Position numbers and translations under genes: made by a program. From assembly GCA_964057225.1 (NCBI GenBank), contig OZ059896.1, positions 14,198,001 to 14,262,000 on the forward strand: a DNA stretch of 64,000 nucleotides, read 5' to 3'. The DNA is from Auanema rhodensis. Taxonomy: Eukaryota > Animalia > Nematoda. The notes under the pieces are model-generated. The model saw only the letters and a program-made list of their open reading frames with translations. It was not told where the DNA came from and did no database searches. Shown here piece by piece: positions 5,836 to 50,439 of this stretch (within the stretch, counting starts at the first letter, position 1; the number at the start of each line of letters is the position of its first letter).

Positions 5836-6423
5836 ACCCTCGTAGTATTTTCACTTTTCATGTCCCTTCTGATATATGTATATATACATGTATGTATATG
5901 TATATGTTCGTTTTTGATATCAAAACTATGTTTTGACATCTGTCCTATACTTCATTTAGCTCAATTTCCACTTAATCAACCTTTTCTCGTTAACATCATA
6001 CCATTCTTGTTTGATCGACACGCGAATGAGGTTGTTGATTTTAATCAAAGGGAGGGAAAAGAAGAGAGAGAGAAAGAGAGAGAGAGAAAGAGAGAAAGAG
6101 AGAAAGAGAGAAAGAGAGAAAGAGAGAGTAATGTTTTTTTTCTTCGTGATTACACTTCTAATAGTTATAAGATAAGACCGTTTTTCTTTTGATCACGATC
6201 CTTCTTGCAAATCCTTTTGTTTTCATTTCTTATCCTTGATTTTCGAATTTTTTGTGTTCAAATTTGACAGTTGTAACTAGATCATTGTTTACTTTCATTT
6301 TCTATGGGTTTTTTTAATCTTTTTTTTTTGGTCATTTGTTTCTCAATTTCAGGAAAAGTATCATTACTTTGTATTTTTTGGTTTCTTCGCACCAAGCCAT
6401 ATCAAATTGGTTCCAGTATCAGA

Positions 6424-8464
6424 ATGCACCGAATTCTTTTTCTGTTTCCATGTTTGATTTGGAAATTTGCTGATGCGGAAACAGATCCTCAAGGTGGAAC
6501 TTTAAGGTTTTTTCAAAATTCTAATGATCAAACTTCTATTTCAGCTCATATTCAATATTGGGAGAATCTTGCTGCACAACGTCTTCGGGAAAAACTTGAG
6601 GTTCATCCACAAGGAGGTCAGTACATCATCCTAATTGAATTTACCACCTTAAGTTGTTAAATCAACAAAGCTTCATATTAGAACATTAGTCTAATATTCG
6701 GATTTATTAATGGCTATTTGAATGTAAATGTATTCCTGAATATCATATTCCTTCAGGTCGTTTACCTAAAAATGTGATTTTCTTTCTTGGTGATGGTATG
6801 GGCTCAACAGTATTAACTGGAGCGCGTCGCTACCGGGCACAAAAACATGGAGAAGCATATCTGAACCAACATCTCAAAATGGAAAATTTTGAATTTACGG
6901 GTTTAGTTAAGGTAATTATTTAATTTATAATAAAAATCTTTATATACTGTACTATAATAGCAAAAGTTATTTTAATGTTCAGACAAGTTCATATGATAAG
7001 CATGTTACGGATTCAGCTGCTGGTGCTGTTGCATTATTCACTGGCCATAAAGTGAGTCAAAGATAAAGTCATTTATAGTTGTTGTTGTAATTTAAAGACA
7101 TTAATCTTTATTACAGGCTTTGCAAAAATCATTGGGAAGTATTCCTGGTAATGCAACAATTGTCCAATATCCAGATGGAAATTCTCCTGACTGCACAATT
7201 AATACTGAATATCATATTAATGATGGAATAGCTGAATTATCTATAGATAAAGGTTAATCTACTATATTATATAATAATAAAATTTTATTTATTTTATTAT
7301 ATTTTTGATAAAATATATATTTACTCTTAAAATATTCAGGAAAAAATGCTGGATTTGTCACGACGACACGTATTACTCATGCTACTCCAGCTGCATTATA
7401 TGCCAAAGTTTGTATTTAAAATAATTATTTACTAAAATAATTCAGTGTATAATCATACATTTTATGCAAAAAAAGTTGTAGTTTTGATTAAATTTTTAGA
7501 AATTTTCATAAAATACTACAACTTGTTTTAGGGTGTAAATAGATATGTTGAAACAGATGATAAATTCAAGGATTCTTTCCCTAGTTGTCATACAAACGAT
7601 ATTGCTAAACAGATTTTACAACATCCAGCTGATAAGTTTAAAGTATAAAAAACTGAAGTTGATAATCATGTAATATTACTGTAATTCAGGTATTAATGGG
7701 AGGTGGAAGTTCATTCTTCAGCCCAGAACGTGATGGAGGTAAACGTCGTGATCAACGTGACATTGACAAAGAATGGTTGAAGTTAGATGGCAAACGTGAA
7801 ATTGTGAGAAAAATCGAAGATTTAGAGTCCATCGATATAACAACTGATCAAAAAGTTTTAGGTAGTTATGCTGCAAAGAATCAGAAGCATGTTTAGACTT
7901 GAACTTTCTTTTACAGGATTATTCTCTCCATCACATTTTCCATATTATTTGGATGAGCAAGTAAATAAAGTGAAAACAGTACCAAGATTAGCTGAAATGA
8001 CAAAGAAAGCTATTCAAATTATGGAAAAAAACAATCCAAATGGATATTTTCTCATGATTGAAGGTATTTTTCTTTTATAAATATTATATTTATAATATAT
8101 ATATATATATATAGTTAATTAATTATATTTAAAGGTGGTCATATTGATATGGCAGAACATCTTAATGAACTTCGTAAAAGTTTTGAAGAAGTTTTAGAGT
8201 TTGACGATGCTATTGAAATGGTAAAACTTTATTTTATTCCTCCTCAATATTCAATACAACTTATTTCAAATTAAAAAAAAATAATAAAAAACACATATTT
8301 TCACATAAAATTAGAAATATTTTTTAATATTTTAACATAAACTTTATAATTTTAGGCTAAAAATCTTACTGATCCATCTGAAACATTGATCATTGTAACT
8401 GCTGATCATTCTCATGCTTTATCAATGCCAGGATATATGAATGTATCTGCTGGTATATTAGGTA

Positions 8465-8503
<39 letters not shown>

Positions 8504-9177
8504 ATATTATATATAATATAAAATAATTATAATAATTTCTAAAATTTTAGAAAATGATATTACTGAAAGTGGTGATCATATGCCAGGATTTTTATTTGCT
8601 TCTGGTCCTGGTCAAAAGACTCCTCGTAACTATAGCAAAGCAGAATCAGGTGAGCTATAATCATGAATCTTTTAAATTTTATTTAATAAATTTATATTTT
8701 AAAATATAATTAATATATTGTACAGAAAAACATGATTTTGCATCTCCATCATACATATACATGGAGAGTGGCTATCATGGTGGTGAAGATGTTCCCTTAT
8801 ATGCTCATGGACCATACGCATGGTTAGTAAAAAGTTGTATAATAACAAAGTTAATTATGCTTAATACAGGTTATTCTCTGGATCTTTAGAGAATACTGAA
8901 GTTGCTTATCGTATTAAATATCTAATGTGTCTTACTAATAATATAGAACATTGTGGAGATATTAATAGTCAAGGTATAATATCTTTAACTATACATATTC
9001 ATAATATATTTAGGTTTCTTATCACGTATTGATTCTGGAACATTAGCAACCATAACAGTATTATCATTAGCTGTAGCATCTGTATCCTTATTAGCTTCTT
9101 TAGTTCTTTCATGTATTGTATTTTGTCGAAATTACCAAAGCAAAGGTAAAACATCCTGCTTTTCAATGGCTTCGTAA
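6424..9177 (+). CDS. Alkaline phosphatase (classical Zn/Mg ALP family), signal peptide plus C-terminal hydrophobic helix, 15 exons
   Basis: The spliced product has a signal peptide (MHRILFLFPCLIWKFADA) and the motifs KNVIFFLGDGMG, VTDSAAGA (catalytic Ser), TTTRITHATPAALYA, VLMGGG, YFLMIEGGHIDMAEH, TLIIVTADHSH and HGGEDVPLYAHGP. It ends ...TLATITVLSLAVASVSLLASLVLSCIVFC RNYQSKGKTSCFSMAS* (TAA 9175-9177). All 14 introns are GT-AG. Confidence 0.95.
8466..8502 (+). repeat. (TATC)n tetranucleotide microsatellite in an ALP intron
   Basis: About 9 tandem TATC units. Confidence 0.9.
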
Positions 9178-9366
9178 GAATCATTTTCTATAGCTTTTAT
9201 AAAGATAATATTATATATCTTTAGTTAACTATATATATATTATGATATATAGTATACGTGTATTTAGATTTAATGAAAAAAAAACAGTACAAATTGTATA
9301 TAATTTTTTAAAAAATGACAAAAAAGTATTTGTATTTTATGTGTTTCTTCTTATTACTATGTATAT

Positions 9367-10388: not shown

Positions 10389-11678
10389 ATGATTCGATAC
10401 TTGGCTGTCTTAGCCGTTCTATTGCCCCAGGCTGCTGGTAACTTCGGTAAGCTGTCTTTTTATCAACTTTTCATCTGAAGAACTTTTTTTAGGAGGATGC
10501 TGCGGAATGTCTCTTCCACCTCCACCATGTCCAGCTCCAATCTGTGCTCCTCCTCTTCCACCACCACCATGTCCTCCACCTCCAATGTGCCCACCTCAAT
10601 TCTGCCCTCCTCCAGCACCATGTCCTCCTCCACCTCCACCACCACCACCACCAATGTGTCCTCCACCACTTCCACCTCCACCACCAGTCATGAGTCCATG
10701 CCAGAGCTATGCTCCAGCTCCAGTCTTTGCTCAAGTAAGTTCAATTTACAGTAACTATCCATGTCATTTTCTACTTGTAGTATGCCATGCAACCAGCTAA
10801 TGACTGCTGTTGCCGTTGCGGAGTTCCATGCCACTACCGTGCTCGTCATAGAACTCACGGATCGAAGGTAACATTATTCCGAATTACTTGTTAATTGATT
10901 TTCATCTTTATTGTAGATCTTCACTGCCACATCTATCGAAGCTGAAGTTCAGGAAGATCCAACCTGTAACAGCCGCAAGTTAAAGGCTTTGATTGAAGAT
11001 GTAAGTTGTCAAACTATATATATATTTTTTTTTTTTTTAAATATCTATTGGTTTTACCTATACTTGAACTTTGATAGAAAATACTTCATCTCTTTGAGAA
11101 TAGCAAGAACTATCCTTGTTCCTTTCACTTTTCTTCATTTATCATCAAATGAAACAATGATATCGTTGAACATATCATATTCTGACTTCTATCTCATGTT
11201 CAAGTCAGATTGTACGAGAATGCCAAGAGCTATTAGTCAAGGTCATATCAACTTGACAATTCTCGTTGCCATTTCCAAGCAATTTAGATCTCATTTTTCT
11301 TTTTTTAACTTTAAAACCATAATTGAAATGGAAATAACAATTGAAATTAATGAGCCAAACATCAAGTAAGAATGAAATTCCGGTTTAAAAGGTTGTTACG
11401 ACAAATGCCATCTGTACCAAAATCCGGTCTAGTATATCGATAATGGATACTATACTTGATACATGATACATGGCAAATATAATTATATAATTATTACAAA
11501 TTATATATATATATATATATAATTAAGATAATATAATATATTAATATGTTTTTCCCTTATTCTTCTTCATCTCAATATTTTCTCTTTTTAAAGATATCTG
11601 ATCTTGAAGTTGTTTCCACTTGGTACATACATGCTTTCTACATACATATAATAGTTTTTGAGAGATTTATTGCCTCTT

Positions 11679-31996: not shown

Positions 31997-34900
31997 ATGT
32001 TACGTTTCGCACCACCAAAACCCAAGAGGCGAGAACAGGAAACCGAGAGTTCATCATACTCCCATCAAGTAGTTGAAGTTACTGATTCTCATGAAGATCA
32101 AGCTGCTTCAACCCCTATAGTCGTATGATTTCTTTTTTTATTGTTTTCATGATTATTCTATGTTCTAGGGAGAAAGTGTTCATATTTCTCAAATAGAAAT
32201 AACTCCGTCTATACCGACGTCGCAACTCCCCAATACAGCTGATACAGAATCTCTCACATCTGCAGCTAGCTATGCGGCCAGGACTATGTTCAACTTCTCA
32301 TCGAAGCATATAGACGACTATAACACTGAGTCAGCATCTACTCCTATCTATGATACTCCAGCCATTTCTGCACCTGCTTACATTAGTGAACCACTGCACT
32401 ATAAGGCTTCATCTGTTAGCTATAATAAGCCTCTTCCTCCTCGTCTTCAAGATTATCATTCTCTCTCAGATTTGCGTTTTCCATCTACATACCGTCACGT
32501 AGTTAGTCCCAGCAGTGAGCTCGTCAAGTTTCAGATACCAATCCATCGTCGCACTGAGTCCTCCTCATCCCAACCAGAGCGGTTCTTTGCTCGCTATCAT
32601 CATCATGCGATACGCTCACCATATATTGACGAAACAACCGATAATCATTTCAGCACTTTAACAACACCAACTCATAGTCGTCAGATATCACATGATCAAA
32701 ACTTCACGCAGACAACAACTCGAGCAAGTATTCTCACCCAACTGACTCAGGAACAGTCAAAATCGGAAGAAGTTCTTCCAAAACTTGACCGCAATTATGT
32801 TCCTTATGCCGACTTGGATTACTCACAAAAAAAAGCAGAAGAACAATATACTGTAGAGATGATGAACTCACAAACTGAAACGGAAGCTCAGTTACAGGCT
32901 GAAGCTGAAGAACATCGAGCTGAAGCTCAGCGACTACGAGCTCAAGCCGACGAATTGCGTCGACAAAGTGAAATTGAAGCTCAGATAGAAGAGCAAACTC
33001 GTTTTACCGACCCTGCAAAACTGACTCATCATCATAATATCAGGGTTCTGAGTGTTGAAGATGTTTCGAACTTATCCCATTCAGTTTTAGAATATCAAAA
33101 AAATATTCCCATCTTTACCAACGTAAACTCGAAGAACGAGAGTTACGAAGAAGATTTTGTAAAATTCAGAGAAAACGAAACAAAATCTATGAGTCTTAAC
33201 GAAAACATGGAAGATTATCCAGTTGTTCGTGATTTGAATTATGAAAGTAATGTAACTCTTAGTGAATTTGAAACCGATTATCGTCCGTATCTATATAGAA
33301 CAGATTCCCATCGTTCTGAGTTCTATCATGTTGAATATGAGCCAGATTTTATTCTTTGGGCTGATGTTCCAAAACTCATTAAAGCCAACTTATTCTCAAG
33401 AGAATTACTAGAATTGGTTGGAATTTCACCTGAACAGCGTGGAGAGGATTTCAATATTATCTTAAGACGTATTGCTGAAGTTCGTCAAAATAATGAATCA
33501 AAGCGAACGATGGAAGAGAAAGATAAAATTGTTCTACAACACTATGAGGAAATCAACTCTTTACTTGAAGAGAAAAAACGGCAGGAAGAATTGGAAATAA
33601 AAAGACAAGAAGAAGCTAAGAGAGTACAGATTGAAAACGAACGAATTCTAATAGAGCAACAGCGTCAGCGAGAGCGAGATGCCCTGGAATTACAACAACA
33701 ATATGAGCGCGAAGCTCAGGCACAGGAGCTTCAACGACAATACCAAGAAGCTGAAGCCTTGCGCATACGTGAAGAACAGGCCTTGTTACAGCAACGTCAA
33801 CGAGATGCAGAAGCTTTGCGGATACGTGAAGAACAAGCCTTGTTACAACAGCGTCAACAGGAAGCTGAAGCTTTGCGCATACGTGAAGAACAAGCCTTGT
33901 TACAACAGCGTCAACAAGAAGCTGAAGCTTTACGTATACGTGAAGAACAGGCCTTGTTACAGCGGCGTCAACAGGAAGCTGAAGCTTTACGTATACGTGA
34001 AGAACAAACTTTAATAGAGCAACGTCAACGAAGTGCTGAACGTGAAGCTTATGAACGGCGTGAACGTGAACGATACACTTTAGAGCTACAACATCAACAT
34101 GAACGGGAAGCGTTGGAACAGTGTCGGCGTGAGCAAGCATTTTTGGAACAAGAACTCGAGCGTGATCGCAGAGCATTGGAATTACAAAGTCAACGTGAAA
34201 ACGAAGCTGTACAGCGTCATCGTCAATGTGAACAAGAGGTTACGCAGCTGAAGTATGAGCGTGAACAAAAAGAAATTGAACTTCAACGTCTGCGTGAGCA
34301 TGAATCTTCAGAGCTTCTTCGCCAACGTGAAGAGTATGAAAGTGAATTAAGAAGAATCCGAAACGAATATGAGAAAAAACAATTCGAACAGAATGAGAGA
34401 CATATTGCTGAACTTGAACATGAAAGACACACTTTTGAAGAAAAAGAAAGAGCTTTAAAGCTTGAACAAGAACGACTTGCCTCCATGGCAGTTACAACAA
34501 CAACAACAATACAAGAAGGGGTGAGGAGGACTTCAAACTAAAAAATATTTTATTTTAATATTAAAAAGAAAAATTAATAATAATTTGATTGCAGACGCCA
34601 TTACACCACATCAACTATTATGATAATGAGCCTAACTTCACCAGCAATGCTATTGAAAAAATGGCTGATAGTCTAACAACTAAAGTAATGGATGTTGAAA
34701 CTCTAATTGAAGAAGCAAATCAAATTCAAAAAGTATAGTTTATATCTTATTATAATCTAAATTATATAAATATTATAATTAGAAACATGATACTAAACAT
34801 CTATATGACAACATATATGAAGAAAGAATTTATGATAAAGTGAATGATACACTTCATCATCACTATGTAAGTTTTATCTAGTTTTAAAGTTTTTTTTTTC

Positions 34901-37622
34901 TTTTTTGAATTATAAAATTATTTTTAAAAATAATTATATTTATTTAATATTATTTAAGGATGATCATTATGTTTCAAGTTCAACCAATCAAAAGTAAGTA
35001 TTTAAAGTTTACGTGTAAATTAGCATAAAATTGACGTGACATTCATACAACCTTATTTTCAATTTTTTTTAACTGAAAATTGGTTGCTTTTAAACTATAT
35101 ACATATATAGTTATTATCATTATTATTATTAGTAATATAATATTATTTTCAGTGTTCATTATGCTTCTACAACAATCTCTCCAACTGCACCATCAAATGG
35201 TATTTTCTGTTTTATCAATTTTTTTTCAAAAGAAATTATGTTTGCAGGAGGATATATGATACCAAATAAGAAATACGTTGACGATGAACATATTTATGAA
35301 GATATTGAAGAGATTATTTCAGTTAAAAGTACTTTGTTATCAGTTAATATTTCAAATTTTATTATATTTAAGCTATTCCATTAACATATTCTGAGCCTAT
35401 CATACAAGAAGCTGATTCAACAACTAATAAAATAAATACTGATAGTAATCTTAGTTATAGTAAGTATTATATTTATAATATTATATATACAATTATATTT
35501 CAGCTTATCAGAAAAACATCTATGAAGATGTGTATGAATCTGTTGACACTGGTAAGGCTGCCGGAATAACAACTGAAACAATTCGTAATATGAGCCGTAG
35601 TAACCAATGGGATGAGGATATGACTATCAAGGTATAATACTTTACTTTCCCATAAGCTTTATATCTTAATCAATTATAATTCTATTAATCTATTCATAAC
35701 TCTCTTACAGACTCCTCCCACTCCAGGCTGGATAATTGGTGGCAATGTCACAGGTGAGAAGACATGCACACCGACTTATCAACCTTCTATCTTTCGACCT
35801 TCTACTTTTCCATTTTTATCCTCAGCATCATGCTCATCATGCTCTGATTTCTCATTTCCACCTACACCAGATGAATATAAGAAATCATCATTAACAACAT
35901 CATATTTTGATCAATATATTATCAAAACATTATTATATAAATTATTGTTTAGTCAAAATATGATGTCATCAGCATATCGATTTCTAATTATATTCATAAT
36001 AATCTCTTTAATTCCATCATTATTCCGTTTGTTACGATTGTTCAAACGATATATCTTCAATCGTTCAAGTTAATAATCAAATTTAACAGAATCAAAAAGA
36101 TTTCTTTTCAAATTTCAATTTTTCATTTGTATATTCTGGTAATATCCACCAGTTCAGCACTTGCACTTCACCCTTGATTATCTGTAAATTTAAGCTGAAC
36201 TTTAATTCTTTTTTTATTAAAATTAAGGTTACAATATTCTAAAAATATTTAAATATTTGCAATGGTTATTGTAAAATTATATATTTTCTTTTTGAAAAAT
36301 AGTTATTATTTTAGTACAAGCTGAACCAATCATCTTATCAAAAAGCAAAGAATTAGAAGAACAAGGTATTATATATTTAAATATTTATATTTTATTAATT
36401 ATATTCAAATTAAGTTTTCAAAGTTGTTGATGAAAATGGTAATCGTCATACCATTGAGCAAGTTATCATTGAAAATCCAACTGGAAAATCAGAAGAAGTT
36501 GAAGATAAATTCCATCGCGGTTATGTTGAAGAAAAACGAAGACTTTTTGAAGCGTAAGTTTAAAAAAATTAAAAAATTAACTAATTATTAATTTATTTAA
36601 AGAAATGCTGAAAGACATAGATTAGCTCAAGAAGTTTTACATCGTAATTCGCATAAAGCAGCTGAAGTTTCTTCCACTACACCTATACATAAGGAAGTTG
36701 AAGAAAAGGTTCATAAAAATTTTTCTATGAAAATGAATTGTATTATTCAGGTTGTACAACCTGTTCAAGCATCATCAATTCCAAAGCCTACTGTTCGTTC
36801 TGTTCATCAATTAGCTAAGTAAACTAAATAATATTTCTTTCTTTCATATAATTTATAAATTATAGGAATTTTGAAGCTTTATCTAAACACGATAATGCTC
36901 GTGCTGAATCTTCTGATTATCGCGCAATTGTTTATGAAGAAACAAAACAAGCTAATCTTGCTGATAGTAAGAGGTAATTCAAAATATAATTATTACAATA
37001 ATTATATTTTCATATATTTAGTGAGGCTGTTGTTGAATCTCCTACTACATCTATCGGACATGGAGTAGATGTAACTCCAACGTATCGGAGGATTCACCGT
37101 ACTGTTAATAGCTATGTGTAAGTAATTTTGAAATTTTGCAAAAACTATTTCACATAGTTGATTATACAAACTATGTGGAAATGTGTGCTTCTTATGCATG
37201 TACCATTTCCCTTTTTCCTATTTTTACCTGTTTCTTATCCATTATTGGTAATCAACCCGAGAGTCTTCACTACTCAAGCATAGCGGAATCAATAGCTTCA
37301 TCGTTTATTCTAGTCATATTCCTTCTGATGCTCTTTTAGCTGGCAGATCGGTTCACTATCTGATTCATCATGCCTACCCGATGTTGTTAGTCCCCATATA
37401 AAATCCCTTGGTCATTCATCATTAGATAAGTGAGTCCTTGGTACCCTTCAAAAGTCCTTTTCAAAGCCTTTCCATTATGGGATTTACCTTATAATATAAT
37501 TATGCACATGGTTAACAAGTTTTACTTTTAATATCACATTCCAGCGGTTCTACTGCTTCTTCAGTTACTGGATCTGATGATGCTGCTTCTTCTTCTGCTC
37601 ATCTAGGAACAACGAATCAACA
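31997..37622 (+). CDS. Large low-complexity/coiled-coil protein region (~1,290 aa, ~18 exons); positional candidate for an IFO-1-like intermediate filament organiser
   Basis: The ATG at 31997 (MLRFAPPKPKRR) follows a TTTCTAG acceptor. A 2.35 kb exon (32169-34520) contains the 751-aa ORF with an E/Q/R-rich helical rod. A chain of phase-consistent small exons then runs to 37545-37622, which ends in a phase-2 GTTAGT donor with no stop. The IFO-1 identity is inferred from position, size and composition only. Confidence 0.85.
33747..34030 (+). repeat. Coding tandem repeat, 57 bp (19 aa) unit, ~5 copies
   Basis: AEALRIREEQALLQQRQ(Q/R)(E/D) is repeated; units start 57 nt apart (33747, 33804, 33861, 33918, 33975). 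Confidence 0.95.
35711..36073 (+). CDS. Alternative terminal exon extension encoding a C-terminal transmembrane (tail-anchor) segment
   Basis: Reading through the GTGAG donor at 35754 keeps the frame open to TAA 36071-36073, ending ...SAYRFLIIFIIISLIPSLFRLLRLFKRYIFNRSS*. Confidence 0.6.
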   Translation, partial: TPPTPGWIIGGNVTGEKTCTPTYQPSIFRPSTFPFLSSASCSSCSDFSFPPTPDEYKKSSLTTSYFDQYIIKTLLYKLLFSQNMMSSAYRFLIIFIIISLIPSLFRLLRLFKRYIFNRSS

Positions 37623-40600
37623 GTTAGTTTCCTATTAAAATTTTAACGAAATTTTCAATTCCGGCCGAAATTGAAAACTATTCCGTTTGAGATATTTTTT
37701 TCTCATCAATTTCCATACATTTTTAAATCGATAATTTGAATATAGCTTCTTACTAACTGCATCCTAAGCAGTTCAACATCATTCTACTTATAGTTTGTAG
37801 ATTGAAAATAAAACAAAAATATATCATTATATAAGTAATATAACATATAATATAACATATATTTGAAATGAATGGCTTACATGCCAATTCCTTTTCTTTT
37901 TCTTTCTCCCTCTTTAGCATGATCGCCATCTTTTCTTTCTCTCTTTCTCTGTATATCATCTCTTGCCTTCTCTCTTTATTCTACTCCAGTTTGAGCTCAC
38001 AATTATATTCTAATGCTTGCCTTTTGCATCCTCTCAAAAGCTATAATGTCAATCAGGTCGTCGCATCTGTTCGCTCTGTAATTTTCTCTCATTCACCATA
38101 CTGCCTTCAGGCAATAATTGTTCGATTTTACTAATCGAAACCACATGATGATCCCACTGAGGTTTTATGGAATCAACCACAAATGTTTGTATTTTCAATA
38201 TCTTGCTCAATGTTTTACCTTATGACTTCGATGTTTGACTTGTAACAGTCAACATTGTACTCTGTAGACAGTCCGAATGGTTGCTCATCTTCTCTCTTTC
38301 TCTCTTTCTCTCCTTATCTCATATTCTCTGTTTTACTTTCTTACTTTCTCTCTCTCCTTTTCTCTCTCTCTTTCACTTCATTTGCCTTTTCCCTTTTGCA
38401 TCCAAACATGACGAGACAGCTGGCTGAGTAGTCATGAGGCTCCCGCAATCGACCTCTTCCTTTGACCATAAACGTGGTTAAGCTTCTGCTCTTTCATTAG
38501 AATATTGACTTTTCCTTCTAATTTTCTGAGCTTTTTTTCCTTTTGACATTCAAAAATGACATGTTGTTTCCGTCTGACATCATATTGTTGAAACAATTTC
38601 ATTTTTCCCCGATTACTTCATTTCAAAACAAACACGTAGAATCATCAATGCGAAATTCGCTTAGTCAGAATGAGAAAGAAAAACATTTAAAATCAACGAA
38701 ATTATTACTTTTTTCATCTTTCTTCTATATTTTTCTACTAACTATATATGTATATATCTAGAGATTTCATAAAATATTTGGATTATCTCTTATACGATGT
38801 CCTTAGATGTATTGTATTCTCATGTTATACTAGCTATATCTTGACCTTCATTCTTCATTTATTTCTCTTTTCTTCAAACTATTCCTCAACATTCTTTATA
38901 CTTTTCTATTAAAATTTTTATTTTACCCAAAGCAATTATGACTCAATGTCAACTATTCAATTCAGTTTTTTTTGTTTTTTTTTTCATTTATCTTTTCATT
39001 TTTCCCTAATTGGTCTTCTTCACTTATTCGAATAATTGTTTTTCAGGTTTTTAACCTTTATTTACTTAACTATTACATCTAATATGTATACTATGCTATG
39101 TCAAAGCTATTGATACTTCTGTTTTTCTTTTTCTTTCAAATAACTTTCGTTGTTTAAAGAAAAGAAAACATCTTTAAACAATTTCTTTTCAATATCGATC
39201 AGCTAATATTCTGAAATATTTATCAGAACTCATTTCACTTTTTCTTCTTCTTCAATCCTCTTCTTCTACTTTTTTCGTTGAAAAAGTTTTTTTTCATGTT
39301 CGTTCTTAAATGAAATCAACTTTTTCGATTCTCATAATGATTTCCTTCACTTTCTCTTCAGCTTATTTCAAGTTGAAAGCCTGATTTGGGCGACAATTTT
39401 TTTGTGAAATGCAATACTTACATCTTCAATTGTGATGAACTGCTCAAGTTTTAAAGGAAATCAAACTTAACGACTAAGAGTGAATACATACATGTGCAGA
39501 AGAAAAATATTTTAATATACCTTAAAGCATTTGAGAAAATATAATTATCAATCTATATATCTAACCATTCATTTACTATGCGCCGCTTCATTTCATATTC
39601 TTCTCTCGTCTTTTCGTCTTGAATATTAATATGACGGCAATGTGCGCGAAATCTAGCATTTCAATGGGTGAAAATGATAGAAATGGCATATTTAGACATA
39701 TACTATGTGTATATGTGTCCGGATCAAACGAACAAACAGCCAGACAGGCAGATCGACGTTAAAATGACTGAAATACATAGCATGGTGAAGAGACATGTGT
39801 ATGTGATTGAGGCATGTTGTATGGCTATTGAATGCGTGAAATCGATTAGATTGCCTGATGATTTTCGGACAATCGAATATGACAGTAGAATAGAGAGGCA
39901 GCGAGAGAGAGAGAGAAAAAAAGAAAGAGAGAAAAGAGTGAAAACATTGAAAACAGAGTCTGTAAAAGAGAAGTGAAAAGGCCGAAACCCATGATGGGTC
40001 ATTGAGAGACTAGTTTGACGTTGGATAGGTCAGAAAGCACCTCTATCCACAGTTCCACCAAAATCAACATGTTATTCCTTTAATAAACTCTATGTTATCC
40101 ATTTTCTATAGAGTATATTAGTATTCCTCTAATCGTATCATCCTCTAAACCTACATACCAGTGTTTCAAGTACGTAAATGGTTCAGCTGAAACTATCTAA
40201 TCTTCATTCCCTCACTTCTTCATCTTATAACAATGTCTATCCAAGTCTATCTTTGTTTTCTTTGTTGTCTTTTTTTTATTTTTCATGGTAAACTGCAGAG
40301 TATAGAACTTGTGAGTTAAACTGAATATTTCATTGGCGAAAATTCTTTGCTCCAAAAGACTTCAACGTCTTCCACATCTACTAGTTTGCTTTAAGTTGCT
40401 CCAAATACACAATTTTGCTTGGAACAACAAGTCTAAACGGAACCATTACAATGCTACTTTATGGATTTTTCCCAATTTGTTTTTCAAAGAATTTTTGTGG
40501 CAATAACCGTTAAGATTGAAGATATTTTTTGCAAAAGTGCATGTTATACAAACATTTTTGATTATTAATTTATCAAAATCAATTTAAATCTAAATAGCAA

Positions 40601-45545: not shown

Positions 45546-47595
45546 TTCATATTATCCGTTTTTTGTCCTTTTCCATACTCTTTTATCGAACTTTTTTATG
45601 AATTTTCCGCTCTTCTATATGCTTATCGATAGCTGTTTCTTTTCATTTTCTCAGTTAGAATCTGACGGCAATCACGTCTTTCTACTCTTGCTATCTCTCA
45701 CTCTCGTTCTCTGATTCTACTTTCTGATCAATCAATATGTGCTTTCTTCTCTTTGGATCACTACAACATAGCAGAACAACAGGCAACATTTCTCGTTTAA
45801 GCTGCATATCATCTTAATATTCCTTACGAAACCTTATGATTTGCTTTTTATGTTTCTGATTGGTTTAAAAGTTTTTTTTTCTGCGTAAAGTTTGTGATGA
45901 ACAAAGAAAATTATTTATATATATCTCAAGAATGTTATCTATTTGTTATAATTAACTAAAAATATTTTATTTATATTATTATTTGGAGATTGAACTAAAC
46001 GTACCATTTCATTGTATGTCTACTAAACTTGCGTTAAAGAACTTAAAATGAACGATAGAAGAAACGATGAATGAGATATATGAAGAGAAAAAGGTAAAGG
46101 GAGAGAAAGCGAGAGAGAGAGAGAATGAAAACAAATCATAGAGAGAGAAGGCCCCTTTCGCCTTTTGTTTACTCTGTCTTCGTCGCCTCTGTTCCGCGTT
46201 TGTCCTCCTCAACCCCCTCTCTCTCTTCTCTCTTTCTCTCTTTCTCTCTTCCTCTCTCATTCCTCGTTGAGTCTTTCTTCCTCCTTTCACCTACTCTCTC
46301 TTTTAATTCATGTAAAGAACTTACGTTAATTCTCCTTCATATTTTCTCAATGAGATATTGCGATACCTTCTGAATCCTTGCGCAACACACTCCATTCAGG
46401 ACCAATTACCTTTATATTTTTTTCTGTTTCTACTTTCTTTTTCCTGATGCTCGACAGCATTCGCTTCTCTTTCTTTGTCTCCTCCTTCTTCTTCAAACTG
46501 TTTGTCCTCGTTGAACTCATTCTTCAGTTGCCATTTCACTGTTATAGGAGAAGTTATTTGTTCTTTTTTAATTTCAACCCAGCGATTCTTTAAAGAAAAA
46601 AAAACAAAAAAATATGATAAATTGTCCATTTTCCTATATTTTGCTCATCCATTTTATATGAAATTCCCAAACTAAATTTCAGTTACTCCTTCAATTTGCT
46701 CTCGAAAGAAATCATATTTTTCTTCATTTTTATGTTTATTCCTTGATGCATCTGTCAATTTTTTGATATTATGAGGCTAAAAAGCGGACAAGCAGATCGT
46801 TTTCCTTAGTCAAGTCACAAATTGTTTACTAGCTATAAACACGAGAGTTTTTTTCAATTCTGCTTCTCTGTTTCTTTTAGTTTTTCCTTTTTTTTTCAAA
46901 GTTTTCTTCATCCTTTTTATTTATTCCTCTGACTGTGCCCCGCTCTTCAAACTTAATACGAATTAAATTCTTAAATATTATATTTTACTATATATTATAT
47001 TCAAAAATGTTTTTTATACTATTTTTCTTGTTATTTTTGATGAATCTTACTGAAATACATTCTATTCTTAATCAGCAAGTTATAGATTTATTCGCTTTTC
47101 CGCATACTTTACAACTAAAAATAGTTTTGAATGGCTATTACTAGTAGCCAGTACCAGAAAATAGTGAAGAGAGAGAGAGAGAGTGGTGCTTATACTTATC
47201 TCTCTAGCTTCTTCTACATCTTCTCGTTTACTGAATAACCAAATTAAACATATATCCACCACACATGGGAACAGTTTGTTCTTCTGTTTTTCTTCGTTTA
47301 CTTACTTATATGTATAAATGAATATACATATACATATATAAACAGATAAATATTTTTTATTCCAAAAAAAAAAAAAATTCAACCGATCTATAAGAGTCGT
47401 ACACTTAAAATGAATATTTCACGTAAATTTCACCCATCTTTCCTCTTCATATGCTAATTAGTATAAACTTAGCAATTACTTATATCATCATCTTCATCAT
47501 CATCAACTTTTAATCGTTTTCTTTCATTTTCTTGCAAATATTCTGAAATATCTTCATATTTTCATTCGAGATTTCAATTTTCATTATCATTTCAG

Positions 47596-50439
47596 AGTTA
47601 CTGCCGATTCGACGCCTACGTCGACTGGCGTTCTCTCGCCTGAAACTGAGCCTATCTACGATAACGTTGCTGAGGTAATAGATGAGACTTTACATGATAT
47701 TTCATTAATCAAACCTTGATTCAGGAACCAATATACGCTACTGTTGCTGACTCTTTTGCAGGATCTGATTCTCAAGAAAATAAAAACTCAGTTCGGCGTT
47801 CTTGGACAGTTAACACCTATCAAAACACTGTTACTCTCGGACACCGCAAGTATAAGGTATTATCTATACTTATTGATTTTTTACTCTAAAATACATAATT
47901 GTAGATGTTAGATGTGGATTATCATACAGCTAATGGCCATATTGCCAATGGATATGAGAAGTTCAATGGAGAAGAGAGTCAGGTTCTTCATGAATGGGAT
48001 CCACGTCCATTAGTTAACGCTCTCTATTCGGTTAATAATTTCATTGTAAATCATATTTAACATATTTTGTTTGAAGATTTCATATGAGCCACGTATGGAA
48101 ACTAAGAGAAATCGTTTCATTAACATGGAAGGACATGTTGAAGTCCCATCTGAAGAAACTAAAACCATTGCTGAATTGGAACGTGAATGGAAACAACAGT
48201 ATATGAGAACCAAAGAAGGACGTCTTCAAGTCTTCGTGGTAAGAATTTTTCAATTTTTCTTTGTAATATCTATCATTTTCATTTCAATCTTTTCTTTTTT
48301 AGTCTCACTGTGCTGAAGAATCACCTGTATTGGAATATGTTCTCTCCGGTTGTGATATTGATGCCAATCGTGATGAGAGAACTCTCTTGATTCAGGGAGG
48401 AACTAAAAAACTCAGTGTTCTTATTAGGTATATCATATATCATTTTTTCAAATCTTTTTCTCTTTAAATCTTAATTCTCTGGAGACATTTCTCTTCGGTG
48501 ATTTCCAAAATTCATCGTTGTTATGTGTTTTGGTCGAGAATCTTCTCATCTTTTATTCTTGTTTTTCTTGTTTTTTTTATCAAAAAAAGTTTGAAAGAAT
48601 TAAGAGAATTTAAAGCCAAAAACAAAATTATTTGTTTGTAATCTTGTTATTATAGAGTTCCATCCACTGTATTCGACAAATGGCGCCAAGCTATCATGTC
48701 CCATACAGCTTCATCAAAGATTGATGCTTATGTGAAGCCAATTCCACGTCCTCTTCCACATATTTCTAAGGTTCTCTTATTGTGTTATTTGTATTTTCCT
48801 TATATGAATCCTTTAAAGAGCACCGTCATCATTGAGCTTGGTTCATGCTCCATCCGAGGAGGAATCTTGAACCAACAACCATCATTGCCACAATCTTTCT
48901 TCCCAGCTATTGCTATCAAGACTGATGATGGCCGTTTGATTGTTGGAGCTGATGCATATGCTCCAGAGGTACAGAAATAGCTAACACAGATTTCAAGATC
49001 ATGTCTAATATGCAGATTCGTCACAATGGAGAATTCGTTCGACCAATTCAAGCTCATGACCCCGCCTTGGAACGATATACTTTGGACAAGGATGTAGTTA
49101 TAGCTTGCTTGAGAAAAGTTGTTGATGACTTGGGAGTTGATCCAGCTCGTAACCAAGTTCTTCTCTCCATTCCACAAAATATTCCAAATGTTCTCATTGG
49201 TGAACTCATCACTATTGCTCTGCAAGACATTAATTTCCAAGTGAGTTAGCATTGCTTGATCAAAACTCATTTGAGTCATGTTTCATGGCTTCTGCTCTTC
49301 TTTATTCCTAAAAAAATTTAATTCATTGTCTATAGGGTGCTGCTATTACTCGTCAGCCATCGCTCATTCTCTATGCTTATGATGTAACTACTGGAGTTGT
49401 CGTTGACATTGGTGATCGTTTGAATATTGTTCCAGTTATTGATGGTATTCAGATACAGTTGAAACATGTTTCTAATTACTCTTTTAGGTTATGTTGTTGA
49501 TTCTGCTATCTGCTCTATTCCATATGGAGCTATCCAAGTTCGTGAAGCTTTACGTTCCAACCTTTGCTCAAATAATAAGGGATTATACTCTTTCCAATCA
49601 CCTATTGAGAAGTTAATTCTCAGATATGTCATGGAACAGGTAAAAAAGTTTTTAAATTTCTTCTCAAAACTGAATTTTCAAATATTTTAGACCAGTTATG
49701 TTCCTGAGAATTGTGCTAAGGAAGAAGAAATGAAGAAGGATGAAGTCAATGTATCGTTGGAGCCTTTCAATCTTCCAGCCGGTACTCTCAACAATTTTAA
49801 CGTATGTATCAATATTCAAGCCTGTTTTACAACTTTAAAACTTTATAAATTTTGTTTTGTTAAGATTGATGGATCTCGTTTCACTTGTACAGAAGGATTA
49901 TTCAATCCTAAAAAATGGGGATTAGAAACTAAGGGTTTACACCAGCTTGTTCATGATGCTGTTCAACAAAGTCCTATTGATAGTCGTCGTAATCTTTATA
50001 GGTTTATAATTCTTTATTCATAAATTTTATAAAATATTTCAATTCAGAAATATATTCCTGGCTGGTGGGGCTTCTTTGTTGCCTGGCTTAGCTGAAAGAT
50101 TAGAACAAGAGCTTTCTAACATCGCTCTTAATTCAATTCATACTCAGGTGAGAACTTTTCAAAGTTTATTTGAAAGTTTATGAATTTTTTATGTTGGGAC
50201 CTTAAAGCATAAAACAACTTTACGACACTTTATATAGAATATATAATCTTGAAATATAACTATTATTCTCCAGAATGCTTTAATACATGTTTTTTTAGGT
50301 TCACATCTCCCCCTGGAGGTATAATGCCGCTTATTTGGGAGCCCAGATTGTGGCAACTTCAGCTACATTTGAAGATAGCTGTGTAACAAAAGAAAACCTT
50401 CCACAGTATTTGATTAATTTATCATCAGCACCATTCTAA
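47596..50439 (+). CDS. PH-like domain plus divergent actin-fold (actin-related) module, 14 exons, ~620 aa; resembles recalled C. elegans F42C5.9
   Basis: PH-like segment INMEGHVEV...WKQQYMRTKEGRLQVF...FDKWRQAIMSH. Actin-family motifs VIIELGSCSIRGG, LYAYDVTTGVVVDIGDRLNIVPVIDGYVV, SRFTCTEGLFNP, PIDSRRNLYRNIFLAGGASLLPGLAERLEQEL and RYNAAYLGAQIVA. Stop TAA 50437-50439. The first two exons contain no Met and start in phase 2. Confidence 0.92.

Follow-up and report, generated by a model that had tools for sequence, protein, structure and literature searches.

The 64,000-nucleotide stretch of the Auanema rhodensis contig OZ059896.1 analysed here (positions 14,198,001 to 14,262,000 of the forward strand; hereafter the window) consists of AT-rich eukaryotic DNA in which introns measure about 45–60 nt, and it carries on its plus strand a gene for a long coiled-coil protein, which we refer to as the rod gene. 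The model of this gene was built by eye and then checked by script; it comprises 17 exons with GT-AG junctions and runs from the ATG at 32286 to the TAA at 37636–37638, encoding 1209 amino acids without an internal stop. Exon 1 (32286–34520, 745 codons) encodes a polar N-terminus followed by a long Glu/Gln/Arg coiled coil. The first-pass annotation of this DNA had proposed that the short exon 9 can end in two ways, either spliced at its donor, which would link the rod to a PH-actin end, or read through at that donor, which would give the rod a C-terminal membrane anchor. The sequence leans slightly toward the read-through isoform being real. The features on which the question turns, all on the plus strand, are the following.

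35711–35753, plus strand: exon 9, 43 nt, TPPTPGWIIGGNVT plus 1 nt; acceptor ttacag/ACT.
35754–35759, plus strand: donor of exon 9, CAG/GTGAGA (CAG/GTGAGAAG), canonical.
35756–35902, plus strand: first half of the read-through, Ser/Thr/Pro-rich and coding-like; G+C content (GC) 0.37–0.40; 3-periodic in the exon's frame.
35897–35966, plus strand: perfect 14-bp inverted repeat with a 42-nt loop; fold of -26 kcal/mol, z = -4.3.
35903–36070, plus strand: second half of the read-through, which holds the putative anchor; open, intron-like, GC 0.226.
35981–36025, plus strand: putative membrane helix FLIIFIIISLIPSLF, 15 residues, mean Kyte-Doolittle hydropathy 2.91.
36026–36076, plus strand: basic tail RLLRLFKRYIFNRSS, 15 residues with a net charge of +5, then the double stop TAA TAA (36071–36076).
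36069–36074, plus strand: weak GT, CAA/GTTAAT, one codon before the stop, in a phase that would join exon 10.
36216–36221, plus strand: ATTAAA; no other classical poly(A)-signal variant occurs before the acceptor of exon 10 is reached from the stop.
36315–36365, plus strand: exon 10, acceptor ttttag/TA, which opens coding exons 10–17.

The splice from 35753 to exon 10 is certainly in use. Exons 10–17 contain no Met in frame in the script-checked model, and they are in frame because the length of exon 9 is 3n+1; together these two facts require the splice. The same lack of an in-frame Met ruled out exons 10–17 as a separate gene. Scored with the gene's own donor matrix, the donor of exon 9 reaches 8.8 bits and is among the strongest of the gene's 16 donors, which range from 5.2 to 10.5 bits. 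The intron behind it measures 561 nt, against 42–222 nt for the other 15 introns of the rod gene. An exon with two outcomes, splicing or read-through at this donor, fits the structure of the gene, because exons 10–17, being without Met, require the donor of exon 9. A search of the organism's own genome (181 Mb, 112 contigs) found intron 9, the extension peptide and exon 1 each in single copy, hence there is no paralogue for comparison. As a separate observation, intron 12 (36709–36750) is 42 nt long, in frame and stop-free; its retention would add 14 residues and leave the frame intact.

Past the internal donor at 35754 the frame stays open for 106 codons, as the first-pass annotation had reported, and closes at the double stop. 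Counted from 35711 it consists of 14 exon codons and these 106, giving 120 amino acids; the end formerly assigned to it, 36073, includes the first stop. Stops, noted there as otherwise frequent, number 6 and 7 in the other two plus-strand frames across the same stretch. The read-through product would be 1065 amino acids long, and its peptide ends in SSAYR-FLIIFIIISLIPSLF-RLLRLFKRYIFNRSS-stop. The hydrophobic end is indeed followed by RLLRLFKR, as described earlier, whereas the stop comes 7 residues after that motif and not 6, a trivial slip.

Two sets of structural features characterize this product. An internal 5′ splice site followed by in-frame coding sequence and a stop is the arrangement of a composite terminal exon. 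Judged by hydropathy, FLIIFIIISLIPSLF is the only hydrophobic segment of the 1065-residue product, the next best 15-residue window scoring 0.91 on the Kyte-Doolittle scale; it occupies residues 1036–1050 and is followed by a tail of 15 residues, the usual limit for a tail anchor being about 30 residues or fewer. The N-terminus is polar, and hydropathy reveals neither a signal sequence nor another membrane segment. The helix contains a proline, and with 15 residues it lies at the short end for a membrane helix.

How readily such a frame arises by chance depends on the comparison. When the 561-nt intron was shuffled with its local composition kept, a fraction of 0.0005–0.001 of the shuffles remained open for longer than the observed 106 codons, the cutoff being 107 or more. 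From composition, the AT-rich second half alone would be open with a probability of 0.011. An anchor-like end, defined as an uncharged 15-residue window with a mean Kyte-Doolittle value of at least 2.5, lying within the last 40 residues and flanked by a net charge of at least +3, was found in 4 of the 1081 stop-to-stop frames of 30 or more codons in the whole window (0.4%). The open frame is thus unusual for one intron, and it is not unusual for a genome-wide scan. Intron 15 (37118–37339, 222 nt) also contains an open frame, of 67 codons and likewise with a hydrophobic end, SSFILVIFLLMLF; its frame is not that of exon 15, read-through of which would end after a single codon, and it shows how easily hydrophobic ends arise at this locus.

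The first half of the extension looks coding, and in the frame of the exon. The 147 nt that follow the donor have an exon-like GC of 0.40, and nucleotides 7–106 of intron 9, also at 0.40, compare with 0.00–0.30 in the other 15 introns, so that GC does not drop after the donor. Codon periodicity over 35756–35902 in the exon's frame gives a chi-square of 32.6 (p 1e-5), with 55% C at codon position 2 and 80% A+T at position 3, and the value is still 23.7 once the 15-nt and 9-nt tandem arrays identified by Tandem Repeats Finder (TRF) are removed. Position by position, the pattern is the same as in exon 17, a real exon rich in Ser. About 260 windows were scored across a 10-kb stretch presumed to be non-coding and none reached this level, and the chi-square of 15 long non-coding open frames never exceeded 12.1. 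A scan of the whole 64 kb returned values of at least 25 in 17 regions, most of them in rod exons or in the span of an alkaline-phosphatase gene. Downstream of the extension's stop the periodicity is gone (chi-square 4.6).

From these features we tentatively favor a real read-through isoform, a composite terminal exon with a predicted tail anchor, to which we assign a probability of about 0.42. The usual outcome would be splicing from the strong 35754 donor to exon 10 at 36315, giving a long scaffold that either runs for 1209 amino acids to the stop at 37636 or continues to exons encoding PH and actin folds. A minority of transcripts would leave the donor at 35754 unused, and translation would continue across about 50 codons of Ser/Thr/Pro-rich linker, the 15-residue hydrophobic helix and the +5 basic tail to the TAATAA at 36071. 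The result would be the 1065-residue form, with a C-terminal anchor that fixes the coiled-coil rod and the tyrosine motifs to a membrane. This presumes that the transcript exists, that it ends inside the intron, perhaps at the ATTAAA at 36216, and that it is translated; it presumes likewise that the tail inserts into a membrane, and into which one. A more specific version seems doubtful to us, namely that an orphan scaffold is made from one promoter in two forms, one soluble and bearing PH and actin-fold domains and the other anchored in the peroxisomal or mitochondrial outer membrane, through a choice between splicing and polyadenylation.

Possible, too, is another account, the most probable among the alternatives: intron 9 would be an ordinary intron, its open frame and hydrophobic end arising from a pyrimidine-rich, repeat-derived tract that is followed by T-rich, AT-rich DNA, and the extension would be present in no stable mRNA or protein. 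Several observations agree with this and weigh against a read-through isoform. Long open frames are common in the neighboring non-coding DNA: downstream at this locus, in 10 kb of CT-rich, presumed non-coding sequence, a frame is open for 106 codons or more from 1.5% of all positions, and seven stop-free runs reach 100 codons or more. The first half of the extension holds the two tandem arrays already mentioned plus many TCA-type codons. Its periodicity is strand-blind, and a minus-strand frame is also open over the periodic stretch. One of the 17 periodic regions, 47461–47607 (chi-square 26), lies almost wholly upstream of the exon at 47597 and spans an (ATC)n-type repeat, which demonstrates that repeat-derived false positives exist. 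Codon usage in the extension is likewise unfavorable, at -0.24 bit per codon in log-odds, where real exons score mostly +0.2 to +1.3 and non-coding open frames -0.46 to -1.1; the model behind these values, however, took a charged coiled-coil protein as its training set, and by this measure even a genuine Ser/Thr/Pro-rich segment, the start of exon 1, rises no higher than +0.10. Synonymous-codon log-odds (+0.14 per codon) were rejected as evidence, the test losing its power and no longer discriminating when the null was matched to AT-rich introns.

The anchor-bearing second half looks like intron apart from its open frame. Its GC of 0.226 is lower than that of every 168-nt window in the gene's 3.6-kb coding sequence (minimum 0.25), its periodicity is not significant (chi-square 8.2), TRF places a period-11 tandem array at 35910–35945, and the inverted repeat at 35897–35966 spans its start. 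Composition shifts abruptly at about 35905. What an ordinary intron leaves poorly explained is a periodicity that outlasts removal of the arrays and sits in the exon's own frame, an exon-like GC for some 150 nt past the donor that none of the other 15 introns shares, a second half that is open despite the odds of 0.011, and an ending of a kind seen in so few random frames.

As to signals for a transcript end, there is no AATAAA between the stop and the next acceptor, which, like the strength of the exon 9 donor, speaks for an ordinary intron. An AATAAT overlaps the extension's stop, and such hexamers are common in AT-rich DNA. One study covers part of the stretch, with four runs (X1–X4) of 18 million letters each, kept as contigs and guessed to be RNA. 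Their word share of 0.29 equals that of the canonical exons alone (0.301) and is four standard errors below that of the canonical exons plus the extension (0.405), as an ordinary intron would have it; the same 0.29 also fits exons 2–9 together with the extension and an untranslated region (UTR), for which 0.24–0.29 is expected, and 0.292 with a UTR of about 170 nt. We read this as weakly suggesting that the extension is no major form; a minor form is compatible with it.

Searches for relatives were uninformative. A word search with the 120-residue extension and with residues 1–430 of exon 1 found no relatives and no self match, and an exhaustive HMMER search of 1.84 billion representatives with residues 1–430 of exon 1 gave the same result, so that both are silent on conservation; since not even a self match was returned, the species and its sisters are not in the searched collections. 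Pfam had no match for the extension or for several exons. In ESM Atlas look-ups the real exon 1 scored as low as the extension, hence there was no discrimination.

We regard it as unlikely that the periodic tract is a fossil from a time when exon 9 was longer, or a short exon on the opposite strand. The strand-blind nature of the periodicity and the compositional shift at about 35905 would agree with either. A 43-codon minus-strand frame at 35782–35910 is open over precisely the stretch that is periodic; it is rich in Asp, Glu, Lys and Gly, lies close to AG and GT sites and displays the classic G1-A2-T3 codon pattern. Yet it comprises only those 43 codons, has no Met, and is accompanied by no other antisense exon that we could see. 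A fossil, for its part, should have accrued stops in the AT-rich second half, where the frame has stayed open at the low probability given above.

Decidedly improbable is the view that the intron carries an RNA element, the hairpin at 35897–35966, serving in splicing control or as a small-RNA precursor, to which the open frame would be incidental. Its 14-bp arms are perfect, with the z-score of -4.3 already listed, and none of 200 shuffles was as stable; we estimate that a perfect 14-nt arm pair would be expected about 0.1 times by chance in 800 AT-rich bases. The element is single copy in the genome, Rfam had no match in 34941–40000 at E values up to 1, and the coding look of the first half would be left unexplained.

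Least probable of all is a long exon 9 that ends at the weak GT at 36069 and is joined to exon 10, its 105 codons forming an internal insert and the hydrophobic segment no tail anchor: among the remaining phase-1 GTs of the intron this one scores best, it would remove the stop exactly, and a coding-like first half needs some route to translation, but at 3.0 bits it falls below every real donor of the gene, a GT would occur there by chance about 1 time in 20 by our estimate, and a membrane helix in the interior of a protein that lacks a signal sequence would be an odd design. No other in-phase donor or cassette acceptor within intron 9 scores like a real site. An acceptor at 35953 was considered and rejected, as its frame would not be that of the anchor.

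The read-through isoform that we favor would have several parallels. In the immunoglobulin mu heavy chain an exon-internal 5′ splice site and an intronic poly(A) site compete, and the outcome decides whether a membrane anchor is present. This is the mechanism proposed for exon 9, with the polarity reversed: splicing gives the anchor in IgM, and read-through would give it here. CASP and CUX1 share a gene from which common 5′ exons and different 3′ exons yield a Golgi tail-anchored coiled-coil protein on the one hand and a soluble one on the other. Conservation of CASP extends from yeast to man, whereas the extension of the rod gene is without detectable relatives in the collections searched.

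Closer in outcome are the splice isoforms of DMPK, in which alternative choice of C-terminal exons makes A–D and E/F either tail-anchored or cytosolic and the tail sets the organelle membrane (PMC2778554). These isoforms are proven and are conserved between mouse and man (PMC2778554). The likeness, proposed here from sequence, is that of a coiled-coil gene giving an anchored or a soluble form by C-terminal choice; DMPK differs in being a kinase that relies on alternative splicing of tail exons, where the rod is an orphan scaffold and would rely on donor read-through. In SLMAP, a long coiled-coil protein, the choice between the alternative hydrophobic C-terminal tails TA1 and TA2 determines which membrane is targeted (PMC2712456). 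SLMAP is always anchored and chooses between two anchors, in contrast to the choice between an anchor and a long soluble C-terminus envisaged here, and neither Pfam nor the word search detected sequence similarity between SLMAP and the extension.

As to the membrane, FALDH-PO and FALDH-ER are the precedent, together with a tail-charge rule for tail-anchored proteins, by which a very hydrophobic helix with a highly positive tail is directed to peroxisomes or mitochondria and not to the endoplasmic reticulum (ER) (PMC5450235); the rule was derived from 51 mammalian proteins (PMC5450235). The rod extension has such a very hydrophobic helix and a +5 tail, and its helix is short and contains a proline. 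If the mammalian rule is assumed to transfer to nematodes, this combination would point to peroxisomes or mitochondria rather than the ER.

If the read-through isoform is real, a scaffold would be re-addressed from the cytoskeleton to an organelle membrane by read-through of a single donor, and the gene would be a clean nematode example; the switch would sit in a gene without known relatives, the design itself having well-known precedents. If the frame is due to chance, it calls for caution, as AT-rich genomes with CT-rich introns would then yield long in-frame open introns that end in runs of Phe, Ile and Leu. Codon periodicity alone cannot settle such frames, because an identical signal comes from trinucleotide repeats and from the opposite strand.

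The rod gene may have a second choice between read-through and splicing at its 3′ end. A candidate donor, CA/GTTAGT, lies four codons before the gene's own in-frame stop (37636), and its 2-nt carry fits the exon at 47597–47675. This exon, 10 kb downstream, opens with the single base that completes the codon, lacks Met and contains EPIYxxV-type motifs as found in the rod; a downstream exon matches Pfam Actin (2e-6). A PH-actin end of the rod gene, as the first-pass annotation called it, is plausible from these sequence features.

Tyrosine motifs of the form (E/N)(P)IYxxV/I are repeated at 34783–35631 and 47597–47860, namely NIYEERIYDKV, HIYEDIEEI, NIYEDVYESV, EPIYDNV and EPIYATV. We take these to resemble SH2-docking sites, which would presumably suggest a phosphotyrosine scaffold.

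Elsewhere in the window, the strongest codon periodicity (chi-square 74) belongs to a Pro/Cys-rich tract at 10414–10797 (PPPPCPPPP and so on), which consists of tandem units of 3, 6, 9, 15 and 18 nt, shows several open frames across the two strands and has no Pfam match. The alkaline-phosphatase gene lies at 6400–9200 on the plus strand, and its open frame at 7868–8077 matches Pfam Alk_phosphatase (5.6e-10).

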